Source of the DNA: Klebsormidium nitens
Taxonomy: Eukaryota; Plantae; Klebsormidiophyceae
Assembly: GCA_000708835.1 (NCBI GenBank)
Contig: DF236964.1
Location: 1 to 64,000 of the forward strand
Reading direction: 5' to 3'
DNA: 64,000 nucleotides
The stretch's first letter is position 1; the number at the start of each line of letters is the position of its first letter. The translations under genes were made by a program, and so were the position numbers. This document shows positions 35,463-57,569 of this stretch, one piece after another. The notes below the pieces were generated by a model. It made no database searches. It saw nothing but the letters and a program-made list of their open reading frames with translations, and was not told the DNA's origin.

Positions 35463-38400
35463 TTAACCCGGGTACGGCCGGCTGCCCAGCTGCGCCGTCA
35501 GCGGCTCAAGCTGGTCCCTAAGAAAGGCATATGCCGCGTCCGTACTTCCCGCCACAAACCGGACCACTAACGCTTCCCCTCCGGCGACCTTGCTAAATGA
35601 AAGAGACAAAAGGCCCTGTACACTAGCGTCCGCAGCCTCCGCTTTCGGACGACTCCCCACCGGTCCGTTCGTTCCGCCGGACGCCCTACTGCTATTGACG
35701 AACGAGCCGTTTGTTCCGCCGGAAGGACCCTCCGTTCCGCCTGAAACTCCAATCTTTCCGCTGGAAGGTCTATCCCTTTCGCTGGACGCTCCGTCCTGTC
35801 CTCCAGACGCTCCGTTGTTTCCGCCGGACGGCTGTTCCGTTCCGCCGGACGATGGAAGTGCTTTGCCGGACGTTCCGCTCGTTAGGCCGGACGCTCCAAC
35901 CATTCCGCTGTGGGCGGCACGTGCCGCAGCGAGGGCTCTGCTTTTCTGGAGGGCGACCATGCGCACTGGAAGTTGGTGCTCCAGTCGCCGTATCGTTTCT
36001 TTCACACGGGGCCTGCACGAATCAAAAACGGGAGATCAGAATCTTTCGTCAGGCGTAGCATGCTAGAAGGGTTACAACGTCTGATTCGTTTCGTAAGACC
36101 CGCGGGAAATTTTTAAAAAGCTGACTTTTACAACTAGGCTGGGCCCACTCGGAAACACTTTAGTCCGAGGACTTGCAATGTTTCGAAGAAGCGTGCCAAC
36201 ACCTTCATGGGCGACAAAGGATACGTCACGACCTACCGCTGCAAACCCACATAATCCAGAACAGATTCATTTCCTACTACCACTTCCCTTTGACTAGTTC
36301 TTTGCTCAGAACCCTTGATTTTATGCCGACGCTCAGCCGGATAATGACACGTGGCGCAGCACCGCTCACCCGATCAGCAGCATCATGCCAAGCACGTGCG
36401 CTCCCGCCATCCGATTCTTGACAGAGAGCCCCCGCCCGTTTTCCAGTCGCAGCTGCAAGACAACGGTGAGAGTGCGAGGACTGAGGACGATTGGCTTTTC
36501 AAGGAAACGAGGACCCTTGCGATTGCATTTTGGCTGCGGCAATGAGTGCGGAAGAACGGAAAGACAGCAAATGCGTGATTGAGTAGGAAAGAGAAGTGCA
36601 GGTTTACATTAGTCAGGTTGCGATCAAATGTGGAACGATGTGCGAGAAACATTTCGATGTCTTTCGACTGCGTGCACTCGATACTCATCTAAGAAGCCAG
36701 AGTTTGCGAGCGAAGAGAACACGCTGAAGGCTGAACCTCTTCAATCCACATTGGGATAACCCCCTCGCAAGCCGCGCGTTTGTCTACATCAGAATCCATT
36801 GCTACCTCACCCTAACGTACTCCTCATGAGCCCTCCTTTTCAGCTTCAGACCCACTTTACCCAGCCATAGGGATTCCCTTCGATTCATCCGTTCTGCCGC
36901 TTCGATCGAGCAAACGTCAACCAAAAAAACCAATACTCTGCTCTGGCAATCTCTCACTCTTACGCCCGAGGATTTACCTTATCCAGTAGCACGGGTTTCC
37001 CGTCCCGGTAGATCCGGTTCGCCGTCTCGAACGTGCTAAACCCCCAAACCTCGTCGCGCTGCCGGCGGCCGCTCGTCATCCAGTCGACGAGAACTAGACT
37101 CGCGTCTTTTTCCAGGTGGAAGGTTTGCTTTTGAACGTACTGGCTCCGTGCGAAGGGCGTGACGGGGTCCGGGAGCAGGGCGAACAGTGAGCCGGGGGCC
37201 AGGGTCACCTGTCGCCGAAAACTTGACACTGTCAGCTTGTTTCCAACTACTTTTGATCCGGGTAGTGCGACTTGAATTCCAAGATTCATATGCAAGTGCG
37301 CTCTGCTCCGTAAGCAATTGCTCCCATCTGCACGGCTCTGGAACAGCCGCTACATACATGTGTCCTCTTGGGATTTGACCACGGCATATTAAGGGCGCAC
37401 AGCATGGAACAGACAATCCGTTCTAGACCCCCTTGATTTATTGCGTCTGTCAGAAAGATTGTTGCTTTTCCCAACGGTTCTTGGGGGACGTCTGTTAGTG
37501 CTACTGGCAATTCCAACCTTCTCTAAAACGGCCGAAGTACAACGGGAAGGAGCAACGTTGGGAACAAACGAGAAGCCGATAGAAGGGCGTGTGCCCAAGA
37601 GTTCTCGAATCCCTCTTGAAGGGGTCTTTCATCCCGTACTTTCAAACAAAATGCACAGCGAGAATCCGACTTCACCTCCATGATTTGCTGCGAAGTTCTT
37701 CCCCCGTTTGAATGGTACACCTTGGAGGACGCTTGAGTGGTCAGGACTGCCGTGCAGGCCGCCCCGACGTCAACCCGGAAAGCGATGACGTCACCCTGCA
37801 AGGATGCGGCCTCAAGGGTCAGCTTAGATTTGAGAACTGTATTCTTCGGCATGAAAACAAACCACGCTTCCCAGAATCGCCCAGAACAATTCAGCGCTCA
37901 ACTCGGCCAGGTACAGAATCCCTTGGGAATTCGTTGGGTATCGTTCCGAACGAAGCTTTTTAACAAACAGAAAAAGGTTCACTAACTTCTTCGGAGAGGA
38001 TGGACTAACCGACAATTTCGCGAAAGGTACAATTGAAAAAGCCGAAGTTGGTTTGATTTGTCATACCAACGAGCCTTGACCTCCAAACCCGCAAACAACT
38101 TTGGGAGATGAAAGGACAAAATAGGAGCTTAGCAAATGATTCCGTTCACTTTCTGGAACGTTCATTTCTCAACTGCCTGACTTGAAAAGATGTACCACAT
38201 GTCAACTGAAGCCGACCAGACTATCACAAGCCCGCCGGGTCTGGCCCTGATGACGACACCGCTTTGCAAAGCATATTTGCAAGGCGCCAATGCAGTAGAG
38301 GTAAAATGGGAAGAAAATCTTGAGAAGAGGGAGCGTACCGCCACAATTCCTCCCCCATACTGCAGCATGTACACCCACACGGCATCCACCGATGCAGTTG

Positions 38401-38931
38401 CCACCTGTAGCAAACCAGCCATTGTGAGGAAATGCACGTGGAGAGTTTTTGCGTCAGAAAAAGGAGGGAAGCCAATACTTGAGCCTACGCAAGCTAGACC
38501 TTCTAAGTTTACATCGTGGTCTGCCTCTGAAACACCTTTCTTGCATGGAAGTAAGAAGGAAACCACATCATGCTTCGCCTCAAAATAACAGCGCGTACAA
38601 GGGCGCGAGAAGATGATCGTGGATAAGGATGCCACACAGAACTGAGGTCGGAAAGTCAAGTTGGAAAATAGCCACCGCTTTCTTTCTATTCTTTACTTTA
38701 CTCCTAGAGAACACATTGCGCAGCAAACTGAGAAGCGGGACGCAAAGTGCTTCCAACCTCGGCTGAAGTAAAGGACGACTCAGCAAATCGAGAGACGTGT
38801 TAAGAGTAACGGGTAGTGCGTACCTTGGTCGGGACCATGAACTTGAGGGGGATCGTTGCGAACACCCTCGCCGCGACAGTCTTCCCGCCCTCCCGGCTAA
38901 AGGCCAACTGGCCCCACTGCGGCCCTGCCAT
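35463..38931 (-). CDS. ureD: Urease accessory protein UreD (6 exons)
   Basis: MAGPQWGQLAF..ATIPLKFMVPTK|..VWVYMLQYGGGIVA|GDVI..CTAVLTTQASSKVY|..LLPDPVTPFARSQYVQKQ..LVLVDWMTSGR..|..RM..VLGMMLLIG|..VVRFVAGSTDAAYAFLRDQL..LGSRPYPG*, characteristic of plant UreD. Confidence 0.93.
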
Positions 38932-39136
38932 CTTTTCCGGCGACCTACTACTCTTTCCGCCCCTTTACAGGTCGCCCACAAGCGGGTTAGCGCGGACAAA
39001 CCCTCCTCCTAACCCTGGAATGTACCACCAACCGATGTCAACCGGCGAACTGAGACGAGTAGATCTCAAACCTTTCCCGGAGAAGCGGCCAACTCGCTCA
39101 AAGACTTGCTGAACCCTGTTATCGTCCCAAACCCTT

Positions 39137-42100
39137 TTAACTCCGGAAGAGGCGCGAGAAGAGGCGGTCCTGACCCCCTTGAACGATGTCGAGCAGAGGG
39201 GCGGTCTGACGTGCGTCCTCGATAGGGCGGTCTGAGTAGAGGGCGGCGAAGGCTTCGGCTTGCGGAAAGAGCGCACCCTGCAGGAAATGACGTCAGACGA
39301 TGAGATGAGGCTTGATGAAAGCGGAGTACATTATGAAGCCGTTTGAAGAACGGGGCAGTCATTGAGATACGACACCAGCGGACGCATGAACCCCCTAAAA
39401 GCGGCCCAAGACACCGGGAGTCTGCACCGCTCTGCGCATCGAATTGGTGTATGGATGCAAGGGCCTTTAAGTCTCCGGCGCTCCGGCGGCAAAACGAGGA
39501 GTGTTCCGCCCTTAGACCAAGACGTATAGCAGTCCATCATGAAGAATCTGCAAAATGGGACCCTGGATTGATACAAGCTCCCCGCAGCACAATCTCTCCC
39601 GTCCATCTGCTCAAGACAGACCGACTGTCTTTAGGATTTCTGCTTTCTGAATCGCTTCAAGAGTCCGCGGCCTTACCTGCAGGATGGCCGCCTCGAGGGG
39701 CCCAATGAGGTTCAGCCGAGTCGCCGCTGACGTCATGTCGCGCAGCGCCATAAACAGATATGCCCTCTGCTCAGGAGATGGTGTGATTGATTCAAGGTCA
39801 CTTTCTGACAATGCACGAGACTGCATAACCTTCCTTAGTAAAGCACGCCACATGCGATACCTTTTCGTACGTTTCATGCACCTCCAGGCATTGGTTTTGA
39901 TAGAACAGAGAGCTTGCGGCGAGCTGGGAAAAGCTCTTGTTCGCATAGTGCAGTTGCCGCTTTGCAACTTGATTCTGAATCAGATACCTCATAGTATTCT
40001 GCTACTCACTTCGTGGTTGTCAGCAAAGATTTTCGCTTGACAAAGTCAACGGCAGAGACTATGCAACAGCCCACCATAATCAGATCGGACTTTACCAGAA
40101 GCTTCCAATCGTCCTCTGCGGTTACACATCTTCAAAAACCTCTTTGTCGGCCTTTCTGGAACTCTGCATGCAGTCTGTTTGCATGTAATTTACCAACTGA
40201 CCAGGCGTGTTGGCAAGACTGGTTGAAGCCGAAGCAGTGTGGGGGTAATCGAACAAACGCGTCGGGAACCAGCTGTCCTACCTGGGCTGTGGCGGAGCTT
40301 ATTCCCACCCGGCTGCAAACCACCCCAAAGACCGGCGCGTGGTGACTGCGGGCGCCGTGCGAAGCGCGGGTGTGAACGCGCATCTCCTATAGAGCAGGAC
40401 AAAACGTTTTCAGGGCAAATGGAAAAAGCTTCCGCCCTGACGGACGCATCGCCTGCTCTCAAGGCTTACCGTTCCAGAACTTTTGCGTTTCCTTACGACG
40501 CTTGCAATATGGGCGCAGTGCAAGCATCCGCTACTGCCTGGACATGGTATCGAACAAACACTTTTCCTCATGCTCACATGTTCGCAAGATTGAACCAACG
40601 AACCTCAAGATACGAATAAGGGATCACAAGAACTCCCGGATAATTTGAACCAGAAGGTGTTCGCCTGAAGCCTTTCTCATCTCCAAATCTTGACACCTGC
40701 CATTATGTCGAACTAACGCTGTAAGGCCGATGCATCGCCTAGTCGAATTCAGATCCCAGAACCTGAAACTCGCTTGATCCGTCCGTCCTGTGGAAATACT
40801 CGCCGAGGCGCACCTTGAAGAACGCAATGCCTTGGTGAACACCTGCCACCACTCTCAGCAGCGCGGCCCCCTGCGTGGCGGACGCTTCGTTTGCCACGTG
40901 GTTGGACAGCGTGGCATCCATCGCAGCGTCCAATTCCTCCCACTCCGAGATCGAGCCCACCTTCAGGGAGCAAGCAAAAGGAGTTTCAAATCACGCCAGA
41001 AATCTGCGCTGACTGTTGCGATGCGAACAATAAAATAGAAAGCATGAAAAAGCCAATGTGAAATGCTTCAAGCCGACCTTGCAAATGAAAGAAAAACCAA
41101 AAAATATAGGTCCAGAGTTGCACGTGGTTCTTCTTGAGCCACTCTCAACTCGCTAGAAGAGAAACGACGACGATGTCTGCTCGGATCCGAGGATCTGCAT
41201 GAGAGTCTGCAAGGAAAGACTGGCTTCACATCGGCCTTGATGAAACATTCCATGGGGAGGAACTGAGACGAATTGCGCAAGAAAGCCCCCTCGCCCCGTG
41301 CTTGCAAGCTTGCAGGTCTTGGTCGTTTTGTAGAGCGTGAGTTCTTCTCTGAGTCCCAAAATGCTACAGCGAAACACTGTAAATAGTGCCACCTCTCAGT
41401 CTTCCATGTACGATTGAAGTGGTCTCAGAAGTGGGTTAACTTCTGCTTGCGCATCTTCCTAAATGGCTCCTTACCTGGTACCCTGCATAAACAAACGGCA
41501 GCAGCAGTGCGCCAACGTTCTCCAAGCTGCTGACCAGAAAGTCCCTGAGACCGGACGGTCCGCGCAACAGCCCCGCCTGCTGTGCTGCCTGCAAGGGCGC
41601 ATGGATGACGTCAGCGGCAGAACGCCGTGCTGGCTTTGAGCACCGTGAAGAGGATGTCAGCGGCAAATGTCAGGCTGCTTTCGAAGCAACGTCAAGAACT
41701 TCATCATACAATCCTTCGCAGCAGAGTTTATGGGGTGCTCACGATTGCACTGAGCAAAAGGTCATTCACTCGGTTAAGTCGACTAGATGTTTAGGCATGG
41801 GGCAAACTAGGTGCGAGCTTCAGTGACACGCTGGCAGCAACCTGAGAGCTTATGCAGAATAGCGAAGAACATCCGAAGGGGCTTTTGAGTGTGTTGGAGC
41901 GGAAACAGAGGCGGAAGCTACCCGAGACGAACGGCGTATTTAGTGCAACAATGAAGGAACTCGGGGTTGAAACGGCTCAGTCTCAGAGCAAGGAAATTGC
42001 TGGGCCACCCTATTGGCGACCTTTGCCAGGAAAAGGCCGAACAATCAATGTTTTCAGAACCTATAGAAGCCATGTAGGATCCGCAACAGTCTTAGGGACT

Positions 42101-42389
42101 TGGGCTTCGAAGAGCAAAAGCATACCCAAAGCTATCCATCTTGAACCTGTCGAACCAAAGCTTACTTCCTCGAACCGAGTGAAACACCACTTACCTCCAC
42201 TCCCAAGGAGTGCGCGAACCCGCCCGTCGGCAGCAGCGAGTCGACCAGCTGCCACGTCAGCCAATCATTGGAACTGGGCCCCGGAGCTGACACGTGTCCC
42301 CCCAGTCCTGGTTCCGACCCCACGCTTCCGCCTTCTTCCTGCGCTTCCGTCACTGTAGCCCCATCTTTTAGAATTTCCGCGTCCCCCAT
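39137..42389 (-). CDS. ureF: Urease accessory protein UreF (6 exons)
   Basis: WQLVDSLLPTGGFAHSLGVE|..LLLPFVYA..|LDAAMDATLSNHVANEASATQGAALLR|HHAPVFGVVC|AYLFMALRDMTSAATRLNLIGPLEA|..QTAPLLDIVQGGQDRLFSRLFRS*. Confidence 0.95.
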
Positions 42390-42516
42390 CAGAAGATTCC
42401 TTTCTGCCCGTCAGTCACTTTTGACCGTTCCCTTTACTTGCGCTCCTCAGGTGACGTTACTGCCTTTTAATTGTTGCATTCGATTTGGATCCCGCTGCCC
42501 TACGAAACCCGCTGTT

Positions 42517-43173
42517 TCATGGGTGCTGGTAACCAAACACCCTGCAGAACGCCCGCATGCTCTCCCTCATGACGTCATCGAACCTCACTTCCGCGCCGCC
42601 GGTCTCCCTCTCAAGTGACGTCACCTCCTTGTCCGCGATCCCGCATGGCACGATGTGCTCGAACCACCCCAGGTCAACCGTCGCGTTTAGCGCTAACCCA
42701 TGGCTCGTAACCCCCCGCGAGATCCTCACACCCACCGCCCCAATCTTCCGGTCTTCGACCCAGACCCCCGTTTCCGCGGGCACTTTCCCGCGCGCTTTTA
42801 CCCCCCAAACCCCGGCAGTTTGCACCATAACCTCCTCTAAACCCTCCACGTAAGCCCGCGCGCCGATCTTGGCTTCATGCAGGTTAAGGATGGGGTAGAG
42901 GATGACCTGGCCCGGCCCGTGGAACGTGACGTCACCCCCTCTGGAGATGTGGAAAACTTCGGCACCTAGCGCGTTGAGCTCCTCCGGGGTTTTGAGCAGG
43001 TTATGGACGGTTTGCCGCTTGCCGACCGTGTAAACGGGGGGATGTTCGAGTGCCAACAAAGTGTCGGGGACCGACTTTTGGGTACGGAGGGAGAAAAGCG
43101 TTTCCTGGATGCGGAGCCCGGCACCATAGGGTATGCGCCCCAGGCGCATGATCTGGAGGGCCTTGTGCGCCAT
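42517..43173 (-). CDS. lipB: Lipoyl(octanoyl) transferase LipB/LIP2, intronless
   Basis: 218-aa ORF with LEHPPVYTVGKR, RGGDVTFHGPGQVILYPI, RKIGAVGVRI, SHGLALN and IVPCGI motifs. Confidence 0.96.
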   Translation of the reverse strand: MAHKALQIMRLGRIPYGAGLRIQETLFSLRTQKSVPDTLLALEHPPVYTVGKRQTVHNLLKTPEELNALGAEVFHISRGGDVTFHGPGQVILYPILNLHEAKIGARAYVEGLEEVMVQTAGVWGVKARGKVPAETGVWVEDRKIGAVGVRISRGVTSHGLALNATVDLGWFEHIVPCGIADKEVTSLERETGGAEVRFDDVMRESMRAFCRVFGYQHP

Positions 43174-43341
43174 CTTGCTATGCTAAAATCCGTTTCCTAA
43201 CAATTCAATGGAGCTTACGCTTGAATTTACTAACTGGGGACTCCCGGCTCCTGTCGGAAGTGTAGTTCGCCGGGCCTGCTAGCTGACGAGAGCTGTTGCT
43301 TACCGCTCCAAATACGGAAGTACTCGTCATGTTTCCCAACC

Positions 43342-43349
43342 AAACCCTA
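43342..43349. promoter_or_regulatory. Telo-box-like AAACCCTA in the urease-lipB gap
   Basis: Exact AAACCCTA about 170 bp upstream of the lipB ATG. Confidence 0.3.
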
Positions 43350-43455
43350 GGTTACGTGAGCAATTTTCCCCGTGTGGATGTCTATCAGAAAGAGTATTTC
43401 AATTGAAGATATCTGCGCTACTTGTACCACTATTCACTACTGCACTGAACAGTGC

Positions 43456-46400
43456 TCAGAAGAGGAAGTAGTTCTGCGCCAGTGGCAGCTTCTCTGCCGG
43501 GAGACACGTGAGGGGGACGCCGTCCGCTGTGACTGAGTACGTTTCCGGGTCGACCTTGATCACAGGCAGCGCCGAGTTGAACTTCATGTCCTGTAAGGAA
43601 TACGAAACGCAACTGGATTCAGAAAGTGGGCAGCGAAAGCTGTTTGGTGAGGAGCAGAATCGATTTGAGTCCCGAGTGTACAGAGCGCTTGCCCATGGAA
43701 CGATTGAAGTACATCCGACAGAGACGATGAGAGGAGCAACTACTCTCAGACGAGCCTCTTGAACTTGGTCGGTCCAAGATTGGAGTGCCCTGCTTTCTGC
43801 AAACTCTCGATATACAACGAGTCGCAAGACCAATTGAGCTTTCTCGCCTAGCACCTGCTACGCTACAAGATTTCCATTGCGTCGACGGACGAAGCTCGAA
43901 ATCTGCAAGAATCGTCTTTCCCCACTTTCCGTTTGGACATGATGCAGAATTTGACAAGTGCAACCAATGATTCCTTGTCAATCCTCACCAAAGCAAAACG
44001 TCCAGATACGCCCGAGCGAACCAACAGAAGCAAAATTAACGTTAAGTAAACGTCCGAATCAGCTCACCTTCTTCGTGATTGTCCGACAGCCTTGGACTGC
44101 GACCGCCTCCTTCTCCAGTCCGTACTCTTTAGGCTTCCCCTTCTCGATCGCAGCCTGGCTCATGAACGCGAGTGACGTGGCGCCGACCGCCTTGCCCATC
44201 GCGCCGTACATCGGCCGCATCGCCATCTGCGACCGGTGTGAATGCGCTCGTCAGGGTGGTGTGAAGAAGCTCGTCAAGAAAGTGGAAACTGCTATTTCGG
44301 GAAGTTTCCTTGATTTTGCCTCAATTTTCTCGGAAAGGGATGCACTAAGCAGCAGGAATGATGAGCGGTAAGTGGGGAAACATAGACGACCGACCGACCG
44401 ACAGCCCAGGTCAGTTACACTTTCCGCAAAAAAGCAATTCTCACCGGCTGGGGGGTAGGAATGCTGGCGTTTGCATCCCCCATCTGCGCCCACGCGATGA
44501 TCCCGCCCTTGATCACCATCTCCGGTTTGGCGCCAAAGAAGGCCGGCCGCCACAGCACCAGATCGGCCAGCTTCCCGACCTGCGGACATTGACACCGGAG
44601 TTGAGGAAAGGCCTTGCGGAACGGGCTCAACACGGCCTTGGTGTCAAAGAAGAATTGCAACCATCCTGGATTTGGCGCCAGAGAAGGCCGGCCACAGCAC
44701 GAGATCGGCCAGCTTGCCGACCTGTGAATGTTGACACGGTCCAAGTCTAGCGAAAGCTTTTTGAACACGCTGAAGACGGCCTTAGTGTCAGAAGAAGGAT
44801 GTTGACCTTTTGAAGTTGACCCCTGAAAGAAGGCCGGCAGCCTTGGCGCAAAGGCCGCCAGCTTATTGACATCCAAAAGTAAGGCCAGCATACTTGTATC
44901 CCCTATTTCCAATGGTGAGGCTGTTGACTTTCACAGAACTTCGACACTTCAAGACTTACGACGAAAATTCAACAAAAGCTGGCTGTCAAAAGCTGCACGC
45001 CGAACCGCAGAACTTTCAATTCCAACCAAGAAACATCCCCAAGTCCATCAGCCCTAACACCCTAAAATCTCAAACCCCTAAGAATTCTAAGAAGCGCCAT
45101 ACTTCAGAGGACGACAATCCTGCAAAACCTTCTTCTTACTTCGGCAAAGCGGACGACGTAAACAACTTGGGTCATTCGCATCAGGTCGAAGGTGGGCTTT
45201 GACACGTACACTTGACACGTGGACACGAACCTAAGATTTTTAAACCCCCACACTGAGAATCTCAGAATCTTAAAGTGAAGGAATCAAACCCCTACCTCAA
45301 CAGAGCCGATGACGTGAGCAACCCCGTGCATGAGCGCCGGGTTGATGGTGTATTTGGACACGTAGCGCTTGACCCGGAAGTTGTCGTTGCCATGGTCCGC
45401 ATCTTCGGACAGCGCCCCGCGCTGGACCTTCATCTTGTCCGCAGTCTGCCACGTGCGAGTCACGACCTGCGTGGGCGAAAAACGGGCTTGCTTAGCGGCA
45501 GGAACGCTTACAGGGTCCAAGTTTCAGAGGCTTTCAATCTCTTCTTGCTGCACCCAAAGGTCTGAAAGGCCTGTTCGAGACCGCCGCAAGTCAGGGGCTA
45601 AAGCCCAGTCAGTCGTGCATTGCTTCATTAGGCAATTTTGATGGTCGTGTGAAGCTTTCGCTCCACAACCCGTTCAACTGAAAGCTTTGTCCAGATTGGG
45701 ATCTCAGGGAAGCTGGATTCAAGTACAGTTATACAGGCAAGACTTGGGATTGTTCCATAGACACAGATATAGTATGTCGTCAGAGTCTGGGGGCTTTTGA
45801 CTGGCACCGCTCAAGGTAGCTACCCGTACTACTTCCGGACTCCGTCCACATATAGATGTAAAGCTAGACCTTAGTCCGTTTGTTTCAACAAGGCCTGATC
45901 TTCCGCGATCGGTCATGTACTGTCAGCACTGGGAATGATATACGGACTGCAGCGGGTAAAGCAGGAGCGTATTCTCACCTCGCCGATGCGGCCCATAGCT
46001 TGAGAGTCCGACGACATGGTGGAAATCGCCCCCAGGTCGTGCAGGATATCCTCTGCGGCGATCGTCTCCCCACGGATCCGAGACTCGGCGAATGCGACGT
46101 CCTCTTTGGTGTTCTTGTCGAGGTGATGACACACCATCTGCGTCAAATTAGGCGTGAAAGTTCGTAAGGGGAGCTTCGTCATTGAACAATCACCCCAAGT
46201 TATGAAACTGAAGCCGTAAAATCCTAAAATCCTAGACCTTTAAAACCCTACAACCCCAAAGCCCTAGAACCCTAGAGCTGGTTGTGCAAGCGTCTGCGTC
46301 AGAATCCGTACAAAGACTCCTGAGGTGAAAGTTTTGTGCGAAGATCTGAATGACGTGTCGCAAAAGACAAGGTCCAAGCGGGAAAGTTCAGAAACTCCTG

Positions 46401-49400
46401 TGAAAATAGGCCCAGCAGCTCTCCTATAGACACTCTCAAGATTGCCGCAGATCGCAGACTAGGTAGATTGTCGACATTTAAGGCCCCGTTCTGATACGTT
46501 GTTGGGCAAGTACTTGTAGGCTCCAAAGCCCCTCGGCTTCCATTTGAAACCACAATGAAAGCACAAAATCACCTCCGTTTCTGAGCGGCTCAACCGCCGA
46601 AGCGCCTCGCATCAAGAGGCTTCAAGGCACACCGAGATTTTAGACACAACTCAGAAAGGGGTCTTTAGCTGCAATTGACGATGGACAACAAAGCGCCTAG
46701 TTCTAAGACTCGCTCACCAGCATGTCGAGGTGCTCGTCGATGGTGTTCTTGGTGTACGGACGGGTGGGGTTCGTGGACGACGGCAGCACGTTTGCCTGTC
46801 CGCACACGGTGATGATGTCAGGAGCATGGCCCCCACCGGCGCCCTCGCTGCAAAAACGTGTTTCATAGCTTTGTCAGTCCCAAGTCAGGGGTGCTTCGGT
46901 ATTTGAGTTCGCTGGGGTCTCAATCAAGTTTTACGATTGGTCCGCACAGGATGAGGATGCTGTGAGCGTGAGCTCCGCCAATCTGCTCACTAGGACTCGA
47001 ATCTGGGGTTCAGTATACTGCAGATCCCCAACAATCTAAAAGCGCAGTCCCTGATTGAGTTCCTACTGTTTGCTCGAAAAGGGCAAAACGACACTTAGGC
47101 CAAGACGCTGGCACCTGTGTTGGATGAAAATCAAGAGCCTTTTCCTTGAAGCAACTTTCGGAGGGCTTGAGGGACTTTGGTTCCAAAGTTCTGACGGCTT
47201 CAGAGTCCGCGGTGTCCGACATCCAGGAGAACTTCTGTATTGGAATATGGAAACTCAAAACATGGCTCTCCAAAATCTGTTGATTTATCCGTTGCAAGAA
47301 GGCCTGAATGAAGCAAAGCAAGCAAACAAAAACAATTTCCACCTGGCTTGCAAGAATCTGCACTCTTCCTCCAATCCGCGTACCTGTGGTAGGTGTGAAT
47401 GGTCCGTCCCTTGAACGCCTTAATCGTCCCTTCGACCACGGACGACTCGTTCAGCGTGTCTGTGTGTATCGTCACCTGCAAGCGAAGAGCCAGCAAATCA
47501 TCATACTATACAATAATGATTGATTTGGGTGCTGCCTCTCTTGTTTTACGAACCTTGATTCGGAACCCCCGAGCCCAGTTGTTTTCCTCAGCTTGCATGT
47601 GGAACATTGAGCAGGCTACCTCTCCTCTTCAAGAAGCTGCAGAAAAGTCAGAGGCCGTGCTTCACCAACATCTTGACACGGAATTAGTGCGAACACCAGC
47701 ATAATACTCTGTTGGAACGAAGCTTGGAATTCACATAGTATGTTTGTTGCTTCGCCGTGCCTACCTTCGTTTCAGTCGCTTGGACCAACCCCAACAACTT
47801 CCCAGACTGCTTCTGGAAATCAGTCTGAGCCCTTCGCCGGCCATCAAGCAAGCTCCTTCTCGGAGAGGACATCGTGCGCTTTTCCCACAATTCATCTTAC
47901 AGAAGATCGAGTAAGACAAAATGCCGCCGCTGGACCATTGCCATACACGCCACAAAGCCACTGGCACAAGAACTAAATACAGTGTTTTCAAGCATCCTGC
48001 CGATTGCAGATAGAGAAGATACTTTGGATTCTAGACGCCGAAGTCGATCAAGTCTGAGACTCATCTAGCAAAACTAGAACTAAGTTTTAAGCTTCCCTCC
48101 CTGATCGAAAGGGGCAGGTCGATTGCAAAGAGCTGTAAGAAAAAAGAAAAGGAATAAGACTAACAAAAGGGGAATGGGCTCCCACCTGGATGTCGAACTT
48201 ATCAGCGACGGTCAGGCAGTTGTCGATGGCCGCTGGCGTCGTGCCCCAATCCTCGTGCAGCTTCAGCCCGATCGCGCCCGCCTCGATGATGTCAGCAAGC
48301 CCCTCCGGCTTCGCCGTGTTGCCCTGCCACGTGGCAGCATGTAACCGTTAAACACTGCCGCGACAACGTTTTTCGACAAGCTTTTCATGGGGGCCCGCCA
48401 CGCAACTGAATGGACTTGTTTGAAGTATACACCAAGCGTCCTTGTTCATCCTTTCAGCTTCTCTCTTCCGGCTCCTTAAGACGTTGAAACCAAGCTTGGA
48501 TAATGGGTTATAGCCAAAGCGGCTGAGCAAGTTGAATAGAGCCAAACATGAGAGGACACTCTTGTCCAGTTGTTCCGTCCACTCAGGTCGGCGTTGGTAT
48601 GCTTGATTGATCAAAAAGCTAAGAGAACAACATTGGGGTACGTCGATACGTTTTGACTCGGACCTGAAAAATTCAGGAAGTACACAAAAAGCAAGATTAC
48701 CTTTCTTTGGTAGATACGAGCACTCAAAAATAAGAAGAGGCCGATGATAGATCGTTCTCTCCGTCGACCAATCAACCGAGACCACCAGTAAAGAGTCGCT
48801 TCAAAAATCATATAGGTTCAAAGTCGCAGCGACGAATGTCGATGCCTCTTACCTGAAGGTGGCCGGCATCCACGCAGCACACTTTCTCCTCTAATTAAAA
48901 CGAGTCAGCTCAGTCTCGGCTCACCTTGCCCGTGAAGCCGATGTTGAGCGGCTGCGTGTCCGTCGCTTGCAGCATAACTTTCATCTGATGGGGGGCGGGA
49001 GTACACGTTGTAGCACAGGTGCCGGAAGCTGGGCCGGTACCCCCCCCGATGAGAGTGGTCACACCTGTACGTTTCATTCGTGTGTGAGGATTCTCAGCAG
49101 AAGGTCCTTTCAGAAAGAGCTCTGAAAGGACCTTCATCTAGTGGGGGATAGGAGGACGTTGTGGCACATATGAGTGAAGCCGGGCCGGTGCCCCCCCGCT
49201 GAGAGTGGTCACACCTGTCAAACATCAAGTCTCGTCAAAAGGATGGGAGACAGGAAGCTGCGTGGTACTGGAAAACAATGACGAAATTTGTAAGCTGGCG
49301 CAAGGAGAAGACTCGCGGTTCTGGCACATGCGCTGGAAGCGCCGTCGGCACACCTCAAATTCGCAATTGCCCAACAGTGGCTTGTGAGGGTCGAAAGCGA

Positions 49401-52400
49401 AAAGAGAAGCTGGGTTAGACGAGGAAGGAGATTGCTCGTATGTCCGAATGACTTTCTTTTCTATCCCTGCGGGGAGTGCTCGTTCTTTCTTCAACTCTTC
49501 CACTGGAATCCAATTTGGGGACTAGAAGAAGTCTTAGTCAAGTTGTTCAAGAAAGGGGCACAACATCCAGGACCAAACTTTCTTCAGACTCCTGTAGTCG
49601 AGCCAATACTCCTAGCATTTGATGTTTCAATGAACTTCGTCATTGTGACGATTGAAAGGCGAGGCCAACCCACAGAACCGAGCTCAAACTCCGAGGCTTA
49701 CCGCTTGCGATGGCCTCGTCCGCTTGCTGGGGGCAGATGAAGTGGATGTGCGTGTCGATGCCTCCTGCGGTAAGGATCATACCCTCCCCAGCAATCGCTT
49801 CAGTGTTCACCTGCAGTAGCGGGCGCAATCTTATACGAATTTACTCGAGAGGCTCTCGCTTTTTGAGCGTGATTGTGGGCAGACGCGTTCCAACGCCTCT
49901 AAACGAGCTTTCCGGTCACCGCTGATTTGACCCCGCGAACCGTCGCAGAGCATTTTAAGGCCCAAGCTTCTGCTTCGTACTTGCCAGATGGCCTAAGCCC
50001 GTAAAACCTTGTCCAAACATCAAAACGACAGTGGGTCCGCCCACATGTCGCAGTGGGCGCATGAGACGTTAGTGTGAAAGCGCCTGCAGCGTTCCTCAAA
50101 GAATGCGTAGGATCCGATCGTTCGCGGCAGAACAGACTTTTCCGAATCACCTTCGGTGACGTCTTTGCTCAGCAGTTGCTACAAATAGAACTCAAGCCCA
50201 TAATCACCGTTCCACTTCTCAAAAAGATTGGGCAAAGAAAAGGGAACGAGCGCTCTTTTTCCCGGAACAAAAGTGGAGCGTCGTTACAAGACACTACAAG
50301 GTGTTTGGACTCACTCCCACGATCATGCCCTCTGTGACGCCTTCCATGACGTCAGGGTTGCCAGCCTTGCCGATGGCGCTGATCTTGGAGCCCTTGATGC
50401 CCACGTCAGCCTGCGAAGGGAGGAGAATCGGTTCCCAAACCAAGCCAAAATTCACTGATCGAAGTTTTGTCAAACCGACTATTTCATGGAGACGCTGCGA
50501 CCTCCTCTATCTGCAGTCTGTCGGGTTGGCCGTACAAGATTTCGATAGAGGCCGACGCCTAGCAGCGGTCGCAGTCAACAGATCCGTATTCAAACGCACA
50601 GAACGATGGGTTTGGAAGATTAGTTGCGTCACAGCACATATCGCTGACCCGAGAGGAAGTCGAGGCTTCCTTATGATGTGCAGCAAACTGTTCAGATCTC
50701 AGCCATCTATTACTCTCCGAAATGCCGTCTGCATACAAAGAAAACGCCAACCAAGCAAGCCAGTCAAATAGGGAATTTAAAAAGGAGCTTTGCGCACCTT
50801 GTAGATGCCGGAGTAGTCGACAATAAGCGCGTTGACGATCACGGTGTCCAGGACATCAGCCGCGCCGACGCCCGCCATCTGCAGTCAACAGCACTGCCAT
50901 TATCATTACACCAGGTAAGCTTCTTGTAAAGGCGTGCGTTGTATACTCCAGAAAATGACAACAGGGATGAATACAAGAAACGGACATCTGCATCGCACAG
51001 CGGACGACTTCGTGAAGGAATGTACAGAAAAGTGCGCTGTCTCGGTCATGATCACAAAGTGGAGGCTTTCAAAGGAAGGAGAAGTCGTTTCGATGTGCAT
51101 GCCCGTAGTAAAGTGTGGCCAATGGTCCACGAGTTGGGAGCTTTGGGTCCCCTTAATCGCAGCCACGCCATTCATCAGAGGCGGGTACAAAAGGAAGACC
51201 GGGAACTAGCTCTGCGGATTCAGATATGGTCCTCTCAATTCCTGCGTCGACCATGAACCTTTTGAATCTAGTTCTAATCGGGGCTTCCACCAAGAAGGCC
51301 GACTCATTCTAAGTCAGCGCAATGACCTGAAGCCCTAAAACCTTAAACCGGAAAAACGCATCCTTGAAAGTACAAGCACGCACCTGGCCCATGCCCTCGC
51401 GCAACACCTTTCCGCCGCCAAACTTGCACTCATCGCCGTAGTGGGTCAGGTCACGCTCAACCTGCAGACGATTAATGCAACGCTCAACCCAATTTCAAGC
51501 GGCGATATGCAGCTCTCCAGCACACGTCAGCAATCTTCTTACAGTGCTAGCTTGATGTCGTACTCTCCGGCGGCCTGTTATTTGAAAGCAGCGGTTTGAG
51601 ACACAACCCGAGCCAACTTCAGGAGCTTGTATCGGTTTGTGGTCAGGACAATCATACACTGAGCAAGGACTTCAATCCTTATTTCGAAACTTAACGGAAG
51701 ATCTTTTTCGAACTAATGGCGAAGCTCGGGAATGCGCAGTTGTATCGTTGAGGACGTCAGGTTGAATTGACGTCTTCTCACCTCCAACACAAGATTCGTG
51801 TCCCCCAGCTTGACCTTGTCTCCAACGGTCGGTCCGTAAGTGTTGGCGTAGTGCTCTTTGGGGATGCTGCACGACAGACATTTTAGGTTGGGTAAAGAGT
51901 GAAAGCGATCCGAATGAGAATTGGTGCGTCCCTTGCCATGCTTTTGCTGCTCGCGGGTAGACACACGGTCTGTGTTGAGATGAACGCTGCGTTTCTGGGG
52001 AGTCTTTTTCTTGCATGTCAGGAAGCTGCTGGCTTTTCAAAACAGAGGAGAAGCAAAGGAGCTAGCAAACAGGTTGTTTCCAGCTCCTTCATCTGATTTG
52101 CTTTGCCGCACAAGTTTCAAAGCGATGGCGCTCGTACTCACACTAAGACACAAGGTAGCCTGAGTTTTTACGTTAGCAGTGGTAGAATTCCCGCTATCTC
52201 TGAGGATAACTTTAGTTGGGGACATGCAGACTTGTTGAAACGTCGTTCAGTATGGATTGGCTGGGCCCTACCTGACGGTGTGATGCGCAGTCTGCCCAAC
52301 GATGCCCTTTCTGCATCAGAGGTACCGACAGCGATTGAGTGATTCCATTGAAGGCCGGTTACTTCTTTCAACGAGCGAGATAGAAAGAACGCCTCATCGT

Positions 52401-55400
52401 TTGCAGGCACTTGTTGCAGAAGGGATAGCGAAAACGAAATAAAACCGAAGCACCTCAAAATGAGCGTCTCCAAGTAGCAACTGCTGAAAGCATCCGAGTC
52501 ACACGATCGGAGTGACTGTCAAGGTGCAATTCTGTAAAGCGTGTTTCGTTTCTAGTCCCGCATATTCGAAATCCGACCCTTGCTCAAAACATGACGGCCT
52601 TTCCATTCAAGCCAAAAGACACATTGTGGTGGCTCCGCGAAACATCATCGCAACAAAAGTCTACAAATTCCTGCTTCTTGAAAACTCACACTGCTGTCCC
52701 CTGCTCCATATGACCAAATCCTTGGGCCTTGACTTTCTCTATAACTCCCGCCAGTCTCTCCGCGTTCACAGGCCCGTCGACCAGGGAGTTGCCGCCGCGG
52801 ATGACCTTGTTACCGCCGATTGACACTAGCACCACGGACTTACTCTCGCCAGGCTGCAGAATTGCAGGGAAAGCGGTCGCTTCTTTAGATGGTGTCATAA
52901 GTCGCAGATGGAGCTAAAATCAACTGTATTTCTCCGTTTCTTCTGGGTGGACGGACAAGGTTGATCGACTGGATAGCGGAACGAAACTTGAGTCAGAGTT
53001 TTAGGCAACCATCTGAAACTTCGAAGGTCGCAAAAGCTCCAACAGAGGTGCGAGCAGCCGAGCATTCTAAGGACCACAGAGAGACGCACTTCACCTCCGT
53101 TTCGCTAAGCTGCAGTTTGCGACATAAAAGTGAGCCTGCAAGCACGGCTCGAAGCATCCGTTCCGCAACGACCCTATCATATACGGCAATCCGACAAGAG
53201 TCAAGTTGCGGGAGGAGGCGTTTGACCAGCTTGCACAGGGCTCCATAGCTTCCCGTTACTTTTGTATATATGTTGTACGCACCTCGAAGCGGACCGCAGT
53301 TCCAGCCGCAATGTTGAGCCGCATGCCGTACGCGGCCGCTCGGTCGAACACCAGGAAGGGGTTCGTCTCGATGAAGTGGTAGTGACTCCCGACCTGCAAC
53401 AACGTCAGGAGTGTCTTAGCGAGCGCTAACTGCTTCCTCGCACCTCTTGGGGCTTTTCCGCGAGAGGAAACGCATACAGGATACCCCGTTTGACCGTACT
53501 CGACTGTAAGCATCCAAGCGAAGAATCTCTTTTAACCTCTTTCCTTAATCCTTTTCATCTCACCTTTACATGCAGAAAGCATAGATTCCCGTACTCGAGA
53601 AGGAGGCCATGACTACTCAGCAAGATTGATGTCTTCTCAGCTGGGACGTCCTTCAGCCCTTCGAATTCTGTGCTCAACCCCAACTCACAGCCTTCCTCAG
53701 CCTCTAATCGGCACCACTCAAGCGACTGCTTGTAAGCTTCGCACATCTAAATCTCTTGACACTGCAAACTCTCCCTCTAATCGCAGTCATCGTTTTGTGT
53801 CACGGGGCCCTTGCCTGGATTGGGCGATCGCACTTGCTGGTGACCGTCAGTTTCACAGTGAGTCTGCCCGCGTTGAGAACGACGGATCCGGCGGCTGTGG
53901 TGACCTTGCCAGGCGCCTCGCTCTCCTCTTCGAGCGGCGGGAATGCGTCGACGTCCGGAACTGTGAAACAAGCACGAAGATGATTATGGAAAGGGCAATC
54001 GGCTTATAGTTGTCGATTCGATCTTGGCAAGGTTATATAAGTTCGTTTTGCAGCGGGTGCAGCATCGAGGTGGCAGGCGCTATCTGCTGAGAAACGATTT
54101 GGGTCCAGCCTTTGACACGATCATCGATCTTTTCCACTTCGCATCGACTAATGCGGGTTGCGGCTTGATCAGGCGGGATGGTTGTTCCTACAAACGAATC
54201 TAACGCCCAATTTCGTCACATTCGCAATCACATCAAGGATCCACCAGATTATTCCAACGTGCGAGATCAAGAGTTGGATCTCTTGACGAGCGCGACAGCC
54301 AAGAGAGGGTCGCATATCTGTGCTTCGAGCCGTTCAGATTCTTAGCAAGAATCTAGTAACTCCGTCAACCGAGCAGTCGAATGAAGCTTCACATGCTCGC
54401 AACTTGGCTGGGCCCCATTGAACGGTTCTAGACAGTCCACAGGTAGACGAAAGTCAGGCGCATTCGAACCTTTCCAAAAGAATAAACATGATACTAAAGA
54501 GGAAGGCGTCGGGCATTACCAGGGAAGAAAGAACCATGCAGGGCCAGTTTTAGGTCCCCGTTCTCCAGCGAGATGGGCGAGTGAACGGTGACCAGCTTTG
54601 TGCCGTCCGGAAAGGTGCCCTCGATCTGGACCTCGTCCAACAGGTGAGCAACAGCTGGCAACACCTGGCGCCTGCATAGGCGGAGCAAGATTAGCCAAGA
54701 TCGGAGATAGACGCAAATAGCGCGTGCATCTGCAGAGGCTCATTGGCGGAGCGAGCATGATTAAAGATAATCAGAAACAACGTGCTAGAAATCGTAACCT
54801 AAGAAAGTGTACGCTAAAGAGAAGTTGACGACTTCAACTTGACACTGCTGTCACTGCAGATCAATGGGTCTTTGGTACCATTTTGCAACAAGCATGGATG
54901 GACCTTATATATCTTAGGAGTTCGCATCTTGCCATTGAGCAAAAGGACGAGACCATGCAAAGGCAAAGCGACAATGTCGAGGTTCCTTTCGGGATTCAAA
55001 GCAAGGACTCACTTTCCCAGCAGTTGTCGCCCCAAGTCCATCAGCTCTGCAACCGACTTGCCCTCCCGAATGAACTCCAAGATCTGCAGAAACACAAGTC
55101 GAGCCTGAGAAGAGATTGAAAGAAAACGAGTCCCAATCTCGATATGTAGATATGTTCCTACCTTCTGAATGCTTGTTGCTTTCCTCAGTGAGCATCTGAA
55201 GAGCAAAGAGTCAATTCCCAACCCTCGCTTTAACAGTATCCTTGGTGGCCGCCTCTTTTGTCCAGCAACGCCCAATGAGGGTGCAGTTATGATTATCTCT
55301 TGTGACAGAAGCTCACCTGTGTTGCGATGAGGGCGATGGCCTCCGGGTGGTTAAGCCTAACCCCTCTCGCTAACCGCTTCTGCGCCAGCACCCCCGCCTG

Positions 55401-55442
55401 GTGCAGCCGCAGCTTATCGAACTCCCTGGGAGCGAGCTTCAT
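43456..55442 (-). CDS. URE: Urease, single-chain plant-type (gamma-beta-alpha fused), about 21 exons
   Basis: [20 protein letters not shown]; [14 protein letters not shown]; [12 protein letters not shown]; [14 protein letters not shown]; GGIDTHIHF; GLKLHEDWG; IHTDTLNES; [16 protein letters not shown]; MVCHHL; [12 protein letters not shown]; KYTINPA; PLAQNYFLF*. Nickel ligands and the carbamylated Lys motif are intact. Confidence 0.98.
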
Positions 55443-57569
55443 CTTGCTGGTTAACCTAACCCGCTAGCCAACCCAATCCTAACACGGTGCTTGCTTTGGC
55501 TAGAATGAGGGGGGTGGTAAGCTCGTGTGTGATCTTTCCGTGTAAGTCAAAGCTTAGCTAACGAGTCTGGTGTTAGGCGTGGTTTGTAGAACCCGAAACT
55601 TGTAACCCAGGTACAAAGGGACCTTAACGAGCTAGCTGCGCCGAGAAGAACCGACCGCACCGCTTCAGAGGCGGTACTAATGACAGCTTGCAGATATGAG
55701 GACGCGCGTACCGCTTCTAAAGCTGTTGCCGGAGTGTCAACTGAGCGAAGCGAAGGAGAACTACCAGGGCCTAGTTCAGAGAAGGAAATGTCGGTTACAG
55801 TTTCACAGGAGGTTGCGGTGGTTGGAACCGTGGATTTCAAGACCTTAGGAATACAAGCAACTGGGGCTGCTAGGGGACTGAGAGAGAGCTTGAGGAAGAT
55901 GAATGGGGAGGCTGAGGGGGCACCCGCCCGTGACGTTGCCTGCAGTCAATGGTTTGAATCAGCTCCCAAAGAGATGCCTCATGGGGAACGAGGCAAGGTT
56001 TCAATAATTAGCGGGTTCAAGAAGCTGCTCTCATGGACTTGTCAAGAAGGACTTGCCTACCAATTAGAATAATAGTGGATCCTGGAATGTGGAACCAAGT
56101 ATCTATAGACCCACATTGCGATCTTGGACAAGGGCCTGACAATGCAAAGAAGGGGGCATTGATTCGTTCATGTGTTAGAGATACGGTGCTCGTTGCTTAA
56201 GCTCGCAAACTGATTCAGGACAACAAGTGAAAACTTTCTCATAAAACGAATTGGGACAACTGTAGAGCAGTTGGACAGCCTTTTGTTACATACACTCACC
56301 GCTGTTGAAGGGGAGGCCTTGGGCGCACTCCTCTGGTTCTTCCTTCCAGACCTAAGCTTTCTCTTTGCGCCTCTTCTTCTGGCCTTCCTACTTGTCTGCT
56401 TGCGAGAGCTGCAACTTTCCTGCCCTATCAATGTGGGGGGACGATGATTTGGCAAAGCGGGGAACTCTGTGGAAGTAAGAAGAAAGGCCCGCTGTTGCGG
56501 GTCTTCTTCTTCACGCTGCAAAAGAGAGGGGATGGAATGGATTGAACAACGGAAAGGTATGGAAAGGGAGGAATCAAGGCTTCTTACATTGACAGAGGAA
56601 CATCGAAGAAGTAGAGGAAAGATAGGATATGCTCCAAATTGAAGCTGAGGGATTGAAGAAGACGTTTGAGCTTATGCTCTGTCGCAATGCCCCCACTGCT
56701 AGCTTTGGGCCTTTGGGCCAATCTGGGGCTCACAACAAGTTTGGCACACCAATTGGCTGCCGCTTGATTGACGGAACTTTGGTGGTCAGTCCTTTGTCTC
56801 AATGTGGTTCAAACGCACGTCAATGCCCTGTGCCTTTACTTTGAAGACTTGATAGAATGAAGAAGATTTTGTAAAGGCATGATGGTTCTCAGAGACAAGC
56901 AGACCAAAGTTATGCAATGCTGTGACCACACATCAAGTGACTTGTCGAAGGGCGTCCCCTGAGCAACTCACTGATGCAATGAGTCCCGCTCCTCTCACCT
57001 CCAGAGAGTCCGAGCTGATGTAAGCGCAACCGTGTTTGGCTGAGAAGGAGCGAAGGAAGTCCCCAAGTCGAAGCTTCAGAGCCATCAAAGTTCTATCTCT
57101 TATTTCAAAGTAATCAGGACTCCCATGGAACCTCTGCGTTCCTGTAATGCAGCATTTGCAGCATTGGCAGATCAAAGTTCAGTACTATCAAGGTGCCAAT
57201 TGACTCAAACTTAGCTGGCACCAGCTAGCAGTAGCAATGGCAGCAGAAGCACCAAATCATGCAAATGAGCTGAGACTCTGTGAGAGCTCTGAACAAAAGG
57301 AGATCAATGCACTTTGACTCTCGCAAGCAGGAAGCGCAAGTAGGGCAATACTAATAGGTGATGCGGAGAATAGTACCTCGTGTCAGTGTAAAACGGCAAT
57401 CTGTACCTGTTCACATGAGGCTCACCGTGCACAGATTCCGAGGTGTGAACAAACTCGTTCTTTAGCAGCTTTAGCATATGCAATTATTGTATTGCATTTT
57501 GCAAGGAGGCTTTGCATGCACATGATAGTTCTCTTGAAGCCTGTTCAACCAATTCAACATCAATTGCAG

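Follow-up and report, generated by a model that had tools for sequence, protein, structure and literature searches.

Do the genes for urease and its maturation factors in the streptophyte alga Klebsormidium nitens form a unit that is expressed together, or are they merely neighbors? The question is raised by a 64,000-nucleotide (nt) stretch of contig DF236964.1 (assembly GCA_000708835.1, positions 1 to 64,000 of the forward strand), hereafter the window, in which four minus-strand genes follow one another head-to-tail from 55442 to 35463: urease (43456..55442), lipB (42517..43173), ureF (39137..42389), and ureD (35463..38931). By homology to the Ure families, UreD, UreF, and UreG build a complex that loads nickel into apo-urease, and in K. 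nitens, UreD and UreF would do so together with a UreG encoded elsewhere. We favor, with moderate confidence, the explanation that the locus is a conserved, inherited “urease assembly” neighborhood of the green lineage, in which transcription is continuous or overlapping, each open reading frame (ORF) most likely sits on its own mRNA, and lipB is an insertion. Keeping the three ure genes together would favor their co-expression.

The contiguity and shared orientation of the four genes, as stated in the original prediction, are borne out by the exon models, by Pfam, and by GenBank, which records the same four coding sequences (CDSs) with the same ends and products of 838, 178 (lipB), 263, and 385 amino acids (aa). 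The urease ATG begins at base 55442, and the ureD stop codon ends at base 35463. The ORFs are separated by gaps of only 282 nt (urease-lipB), 127 nt (lipB-ureF), and 205 nt (ureF-ureD), and the exactly mapped introns of the cluster genes measure 357 to 606 nt. With about 16,000 genes in the genome, we put the chance that three of four urease-pathway genes are adjacent and co-oriented at the order of 1e-7; since, in addition, the gene order recurs in other genomes, the linkage is not due to chance.

Nor is the linkage new. In the study by Foflonker and Blaby-Haas (Mol Biol Evol 38:650, PMC7826186), supplementary file 1 lists kfl00015_0050, _0060, and _0080 of K. nitens as one conserved neighborhood under criteria 2 and 3, together with ostta15g01680 (UreD), ostta15g01700 (urease), and ostta15g01720 (UreF) of Ostreococcus tauri and their Bathycoccus orthologues, and the cluster is summarized as a known “urease assembly.” From the numbering, DF236964.1 appears to be scaffold kfl00015, and kfl00015_0070 appears to be lipB. 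The claim that such clustering had not been described in a streptophyte alga is thus overturned, as the K. nitens linkage was already documented, and what is new is only the possible joint transcription; we found no discussion of transcripts, spacers, or lipB in that study. The published list together with our own contigs (L002, L003, and L005/L007, described below) places urease, UreD, and UreF within a few genes of one another in at least three species.

How far does the tight arrangement extend beyond K. nitens? Two Klebsormidium-like genomic contigs, L002 (JGI metagenome 3300060284) and L003 (Logan SRR23617307), keep the order urease>lipB>ureF>ureD with conserved exons, while their introns cannot be aligned to those of K. 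nitens. Their spacers measure 333, 309, and 48 nt in L002 and 311, 131, and 219 nt in L003, and the 48 nt between the ureF stop and the ureD ATG of L002 are in frame. A second organism, seen in runs SRR8128903, -05, -06, and -07 (GC content 0.42), carries on single contigs a urease of 838 aa, 313 nt of spacer, a UreF of 354 aa, 248 nt of spacer, and a UreD of 345 aa; lipB is not on these contigs. Their urease ORF is intron-free, and one of them, L005, begins with 136 nt that are unlike the others and end exactly at a K. nitens exon boundary. These 136 nt are thus a retained intron, and the contigs represent spliced RNA from an intron-bearing genome. In the UreD tree, the protein of this organism falls beside those of Mesotaenium and Spirogloea and a “Leptophrys” sequence (support 84/77; inner node 95/92), a placement that makes the organism a probable zygnematophyte. 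For a third organism (ERR12684107, GC 0.63), one spliced contig carries urease, then 416 nt of spacer, then UreF; the 659 nt after UreF contain no UreD.

Elsewhere the genes stand apart. The UreF gene of the liverwort Calypogeia is flanked by Kinase-PPPase and Coq4 genes, and neither urease nor UreD lies within 10 kb of it; seven AT-rich metagenome contigs have a UreF of one exon standing by itself, again with neither urease nor UreD for up to 10 kb to each side; and the UreD of Chrysoparadoxa stands alone. For a Diphasiastrum UreD, no record was returned. A eukaryote-like contig, L006, carries UreD in two ORF pieces (2532-3560) beside a NIPA-like magnesium transporter and Vac_ImportDeg, without UreF or urease. 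The unit was probably already in place before Klebsormidiophyceae and the Zygnematophyceae-like alga diverged, and would be looser in prasinophytes and dispersed in land plants. Of the two origins first proposed, an ancestral or a re-assembled nickel-enzyme unit, the ancestral one fits the presence of urease>ureF>ureD in the Zygnematophyceae-like alga and the lone liverwort UreF, while the inclusion of lipB in such a unit does not hold up well, since lipB is absent from the cluster outside Klebsormidium (in both the SRR81289xx and ERR12684107 contigs) and is therefore probably a passenger.

The transcripts of K. nitens itself were approached through the 6-kb stretch 38300-44299, part of which occurs in 20 public runs; the presumed-RNA runs contain 0.34 to 0.45 of its words, approximately the exonic share. 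RNA contigs from four studies with two species labels were aligned to this stretch. Every one of the four runs yielded a contig of 6.9 to 7.4 kb that is spliced at seven GT..AG introns. In three of the four, the long contig is unbroken across both 42194-43589 (last urease exon, spacer, lipB, spacer, and ureF exon 1) and 38822-39276 (last ureF exon, spacer, and ureD exon 1); in run X5, the long contig stops at 40282, and the block 38822-39276 is found on another contig, 1,251 nt long. Because spliced contigs cover both blocks, all three K. nitens spacers are present in processed RNA. That the cluster is operon-like does not follow, as RNA contigs that span several genes cannot prove a single transcript.

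The spacers themselves point to how the downstream ORFs may be translated. On the minus strand, the urease-lipB spacer (43174..43455) and the lipB-ureF spacer (42390..42516) lie within the RNA block 42194-43589, and the ureF-ureD spacer (38932..39136) within 38822-39276. The first has 1 ATG where 5.1 are expected and the third has none where 3.6 are expected; the lipB-ureF spacer has a single ATG, at -90 from the ureF start. In 12 spacers from five sources, 14 ATGs were observed against 49.2 expected from shuffles, whereas ATG is normally frequent in the ureF introns (41 versus 39 expected) and in the 3' flanks after the last gene (7 versus 8.9, 7 versus 10.2, and 11 versus 8.9 expected). The spacers thus resemble 5' leaders rather than 3' untranslated regions (UTRs). 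Upstream of urease, 539 nt (55443..55981, minus strand) are free of ATG, the nearest upstream one on that strand being at 55982, and this stretch is the probable urease 5' leader; on the zygnematophyte-like RNA contig L007, the urease leader has no ATG in 773 nt, compared with 11.7 expected. Counted back from each start codon, the ATG-free distance in K. nitens is 539 nt for urease, 156 nt for lipB, 89 nt for ureF, and 405 nt for ureD, about 200 nt of the last lying in ureF coding sequence; in the second organism, it is at least 773 nt for urease, 431 nt for ureF, and 282 nt for ureD. Several of these stretches extend into the coding sequence of the upstream gene, which fits transcription start sites in or before the spacers, that is, overlapping tandem units, better than it fits cap-dependent scanning of a polycistron.

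Under the inherited-neighborhood explanation, transcription would run continuously or in overlapping units across the spacers of 127 to 282 nt, and each ORF would most likely be translated from its own mRNA, with an ATG-free leader beginning either within the spacer or within the 3' end of the gene before it. The unrelated lipB would have been inserted between urease and ureF and would ride on local transcription. Several observations weigh against this explanation or parts of it. The contigs were built from 31-letter words, for which rare read-through or overlapping UTRs are sufficient to join genes, and they show the presence of RNA rather than single molecules or abundance. Moreover, the K. 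nitens contigs reach 1.0 to 3.3 kb past the urease ATG, beyond the 539-nt leader, and probably enter the divergent plus-strand ArfGAP-like neighbor; the joining would then not be specific to the urease cluster. The identity of the second organism comes from one gene tree with moderate support, the depletion of ATG in the lipB-ureF spacer is weak (1 versus 2.2 expected in K. nitens, 5 versus 5.1 in L002), and a retrogene origin of lipB is suggested by its intronlessness alone.

A true nuclear operon, with one primary transcript and, at least in part, a single mature polycistronic urease-lipB-ureF-ureD mRNA whose downstream ORFs are reached by reinitiation or another noncanonical route, would account for the spliced contigs over all ORFs and spacers in four studies, for the likewise joined urease-ureF-ureD of the second organism in four runs, and for the gaps of 127 to 282 nt (48 nt and in frame in L002), which are within the range of proven chlorophyte polycistrons. 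The spacers are also nearly ATG-free, as reinitiation would require, and none contains AATAAA. The consensus of poly(A) signals is uninformative here: the lipB-ureF spacer has a single ATTAAA, and the ureF-ureD spacer a single TGTAA. However, leaky scanning is inapplicable because the upstream ORFs are long and not ATG-poor (11 ATGs in lipB versus 8.4 expected and 9 in ureF versus 8.9 expected, with a urease ORF of about 2.5 kb), and because the start context is strong in three of the four genes (AAGATGG in lipB, AAGATGA in urease, and AAGATGG in ureD). Reinitiation after ORFs of 650 to 2,500 nt is inefficient in eukaryotes, and the ATG-free zone before ureD continues into the ureF CDS, as an internal start site would need and reinitiation would not. 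Given also that contigs cannot reveal single molecules, we regard the operon as unlikely. Quite unlikely, in our judgment, is the broader proposition that in two streptophyte-algal classes, Klebsormidiophyceae and a Zygnematophyceae-like lineage, urease, ureF, and ureD (joined by lipB in Klebsormidium) make up a nuclear operon with one primary transcript and possibly a polycistronic mRNA, and that its order ABC>F>D was handed down from the bacterial ureABC-F-(G)-D operon and broken up only in land plants. If a nuclear operon did exist, its long downstream ORFs would need a translation mechanism other than the leaky scanning of chlorophytes.

At the other extreme, the linkage could be neutral, with genes that are still neighbors through chance or because little rearrangement occurred, and with contigs that span them as an assembly effect of a compact region without shared regulation. 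The unrelated lipB in the middle of the cluster would then be no surprise, the contig joining seems to reach the divergent neighbor as well, and the spacers are barely conserved between K. nitens and L003. Indeed, spacer conservation was dropped as evidence, since identities of 58 to 72% against 56 to 59% for shuffles are marginal: the lipB-ureF spacer reaches 72% identity with L003 against 59% for shuffles, and the urease-lipB spacer cannot be aligned above shuffle level. Yet an alga from another class has the same order and orientation at about 50% UreD and UreF divergence, the prasinophyte genes are also linked while the unrelated flanking genes differ, the depletion of ATG in the spacers points to selection, and chance adjacency of three pathway genes is as improbable as estimated above. 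We accordingly hold it quite doubtful that the linkage is neutral and retain the inherited neighborhood as the better explanation.

Could the cluster instead be a recently transferred bacterial ure operon that gained its introns later? The order urease>ureF>ureD is indeed collinear with bacterial ureABC-F-G-D operons, as exemplified by L019 (1-3564), a bacterial metagenome contig of GC 0.65 in which ureB-ureC, an 8-nt gap, ureF, and ureG follow one another and whose UreF is 42% identical to that of K. nitens. A library-wide search with ureD exon 4 (77 aa) returned 945 relatives; the best of them are eukaryotic (Chrysoparadoxa, Adiantum, Spirogloea, and fungi, at 51 to 55%), although one UreD of Verrucomicrobiales is about as near, as is a UreD of Phycisphaera that came up as a match to Spirogloea UreD. 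In a search of the PDB with a urease core exon, plant and bacterial ureases matched equally, which is uninformative on origin. However, in K. nitens, urease is one fused chain of eukaryotic type whose gene has 19 introns, the trees place UreD and UreF among streptophyte proteins (in the UreF tree, K. nitens and two algal sequences separate from embryophytes with support 99/97), LipB is the plant LIP2, and the GC content of the cluster, about 0.52, is even along the whole window, so that the cluster is no compositional island. Recent transfer was rejected on these grounds and is very improbable. Judged from their sequences, the cluster proteins are of eukaryote or plant type and not recent bacterial imports, because the urease is a fused single chain with 19 introns; the earlier description of urease, ureF, and ureD as intron-rich and plant-like agrees with their 20, 6, and 6 exons, the urease fusion, and the UreD and UreF trees. 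The gene order may still go back to an ancient bacterial operon rather than to a recent event.

The urease gene encodes the single-chain gamma-beta-alpha form of 838 aa in 20 coding exons, and the GenBank product contains PF00547, PF00699, PF00449, and PF01979. A tblastn search with the full-length 838-aa urease P0458 gave 20 collinear minus-strand blocks that span residues 1-838. These blocks place exons 1 to 5 approximately at 55442-55314, 55122-55012, 54679-54521, 53961-53797, and 53396-53283; exons 6 to 10 approximately at 52859-52689, 51886-51773, 51464-51354, 50881-50798, and 50413-50309; and exons 11 to 15 approximately at 49810-49700, 49065-48925, 48332-48171, 47481-47386, and 46855-46715. 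Exons 16 to 20 lie at 46170-45964, 45469-45290, 44582-44442, 44227-44067, and 43589-43456. The last two exons and the intron between them (43590-44066) are set by RNA joints, and the upstream exon edges are approximate; a splice-site search for these edges was ambiguous, with many paths, one of which gives 838 aa, and the homology blocks were used instead. All nickel-site and catalytic motifs are present in the exon translations (HxH, KLHEDWG with the carbamylated Lys, CHHL, and DSQAMGR), the C terminus reads NYFLF followed by the stop at 43456, and the stretch 45979-46137 aligns with residues 590-642 of jack bean urease (3LA4/4G7E).

Two further features lie within the urease gene. A pseudo-exon on the minus strand at 44659..44724, within intron 17, is a partial copy of the start of exon 18, detected as a second tblastn block to residues 696-718 at 65% identity; it is absent in L002, where both K. 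nitens copies map to one place. The sole Rfam match, 5_ureB_sRNA at 49714-49852 on the plus strand (57.7 bits), runs antisense to exon 11 of urease and is most likely an artifact, because this Helicobacter family is itself antisense to conserved urease coding sequence.

The lipB gene is a single ORF for a LIP2-type octanoyltransferase of 218 aa. It matches the Pfam family LplA-B_cat (PF21948) at residues 18-209 (155.5 bits, E=2e-45, profile positions 4-199 of 200) and contains the motifs RKIGAVG, with the conserved Lys, and PCG, with the conserved Cys. Its identity is 52 to 58% with land-plant mitochondrial LIP2, 95% with the Klebsormidium-like relative in L003, and 84% with that in L002. The RNA contigs show no splice joint inside lipB, and so the 178-aa GenBank model carries a false intron: the 218-aa ORF is intact, unspliced, and homologous from end to end. 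Exact look-ups of the 218-aa and 210-aa LipB ORFs returned no database record. The K. nitens annotation should accordingly give lipB as an intronless 218-aa ORF in place of the spliced 178-aa model. We suggest that lipB is a Klebsormidium-specific insertion and possibly a retrogene.

The ureF exons lie on the minus strand at 42389-42194, 41587-41473, 40958-40813, 40385-40282, 39766-39676, and 39276-39137, with edges taken from RNA joints and a possible shift of 1 to 2 nt. Joined, they give 792 nt, or 263 aa plus a stop, equal to the GenBank product with PF01730 (P0341, “urease accessory protein F [Klebsormidium nitens]”). Single ureF exons score 21.5 and 20.4 bits, below the Pfam UreF cut-off of 23.3, and the complete 263-aa protein with its PF01730 domain is 55% and 52% identical to two algal UreFs.

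For ureD, the minus-strand exons are 38931-38822, 38402-38339, 37795-37676, 37208-36978, 36452-36370, and 36012-35463; the first two junctions come from RNA joints plus a loose end, and all junctions that we placed ourselves are AG/GT. The model encodes 385 aa with one terminal stop, and the GenBank product is likewise 385 aa with PF01774; against a Pfam UreD cut-off of 27, exon 4 scores 91.3 bits (1e-25) and exon 3 scores 37.9 bits. The last exon (35463-36012) carries a Gly/Ser-rich repetitive insert of about 100 aa (...SGGTEQPSGGNNGASGG...SGGTEGPSGGTNG...), which makes K. nitens UreD 385 aa long, versus about 290 to 345 aa in relatives, and to which L003 aligns at two offsets. Among the long UreD matches checked, there was no UreF-UreD fusion. 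UreD is fused to other domains in fungi: P0224 (Rhizophlyctis rosea, 1085 aa) joins ankyrin repeats to UreD, and P0274 (Tulasnella, 501 aa) joins UreD to a GNAT acetyltransferase. The “Leptophrys” UreD of the tree described above (P0131, EukProt Leptophrys vorax, a “vampyrellid”) branches inside the Zygnematophyceae clade and may come from algal prey in the transcriptome.

Around the cluster, no other gene of the pathway was seen. Pfam detected no urea transporter, UreG, or nickel transporter on the flanking ORFs, and all frames of the window lack both the P-loop of UreG and its ESGGDNL motif. Besides a response-regulator receiver domain at some distance (25946-26314, minus strand, 1e-16), Pfam matched on these ORFs only a weak ArfGAP domain (58581-59426, E=1e-4) in the divergent plus-strand neighbor at 55590-59426, whose 5' end may overlap the urease leader. 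The next CDS in the GenBank annotation is that of a convergent methyltransferase, 928 nt off.

The bare gene neighborhood is on record and its observation alone adds little. If a 2.5-kb enzyme gene were indeed co-transcribed with its maturation factors, polycistronic expression, so far a chlorophyte matter, would be extended to streptophytes and also to upstream ORFs too long for the leaky-scanning model, and if the tight urease-ureF-ureD arrangement was kept up to Zygnematophyceae and then dispersed in embryophytes, the reorganization of this nickel-enzyme pathway would date to the origin of land plants. We found no literature on long-read transcriptomes of K. nitens or on the run accessions.

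How does the K. nitens cluster compare with known systems? The published “urease assembly” (PMC7826186) comprises the same three functions at the same K. nitens locus, but the O. tauri genes have the unrelated ostta15g01690 and 01710 between them, whereas in K. nitens they run head-to-tail with spacers of 127 to 282 nt and lipB. Bacterial ureABC-(E)-F-G-D operons likewise have the structural genes first, then ureF, and then ureD, on one strand and with tight spacing. Unlike them, K. nitens has its structural genes fused into one 838-aa ORF, 19, 5, and 5 introns, and proteins of eukaryote type; neither ureE nor ureG is in the window, and Shine-Dalgarno-coupled translation is impossible.

The polycistronic loci of chlorophytes, proven by Iso-Seq and proteomics, have median inter-ORF distances of 212 to 260 nt, versus about 3,300 nt for ordinary colinear pairs, and the one mechanism established in green algae, leaky scanning, depends on a first ORF that is short and ATG-poor and has a weak start context (Gallaher et al. 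2021, PMC7896298; PMC11291117); neither paper mentions a streptophyte case. The K. nitens cluster resembles these loci in its colinear ORFs about 100 to 300 nt apart, its distances of 282, 127, and 205 nt being of the same order, and in having RNA over the inter-ORF regions. It differs in its upstream ORFs, which are long, ATG-rich, and strong in start context rather than small, ATG-poor, and weak as in those loci, and in that its RNA is represented by assembled short-read contigs only. Flowering plants, finally, have orthologous proteins, seed-plant UreF being 33 to 38% identical to that of the L005 organism and seed-plant UreD 43 to 46% identical to that of Spirogloea, and in Arabidopsis the genes for urease, UreD, UreF, and UreG are unlinked (At1g67550, At2g35035, At1g21840, and At2g34470).

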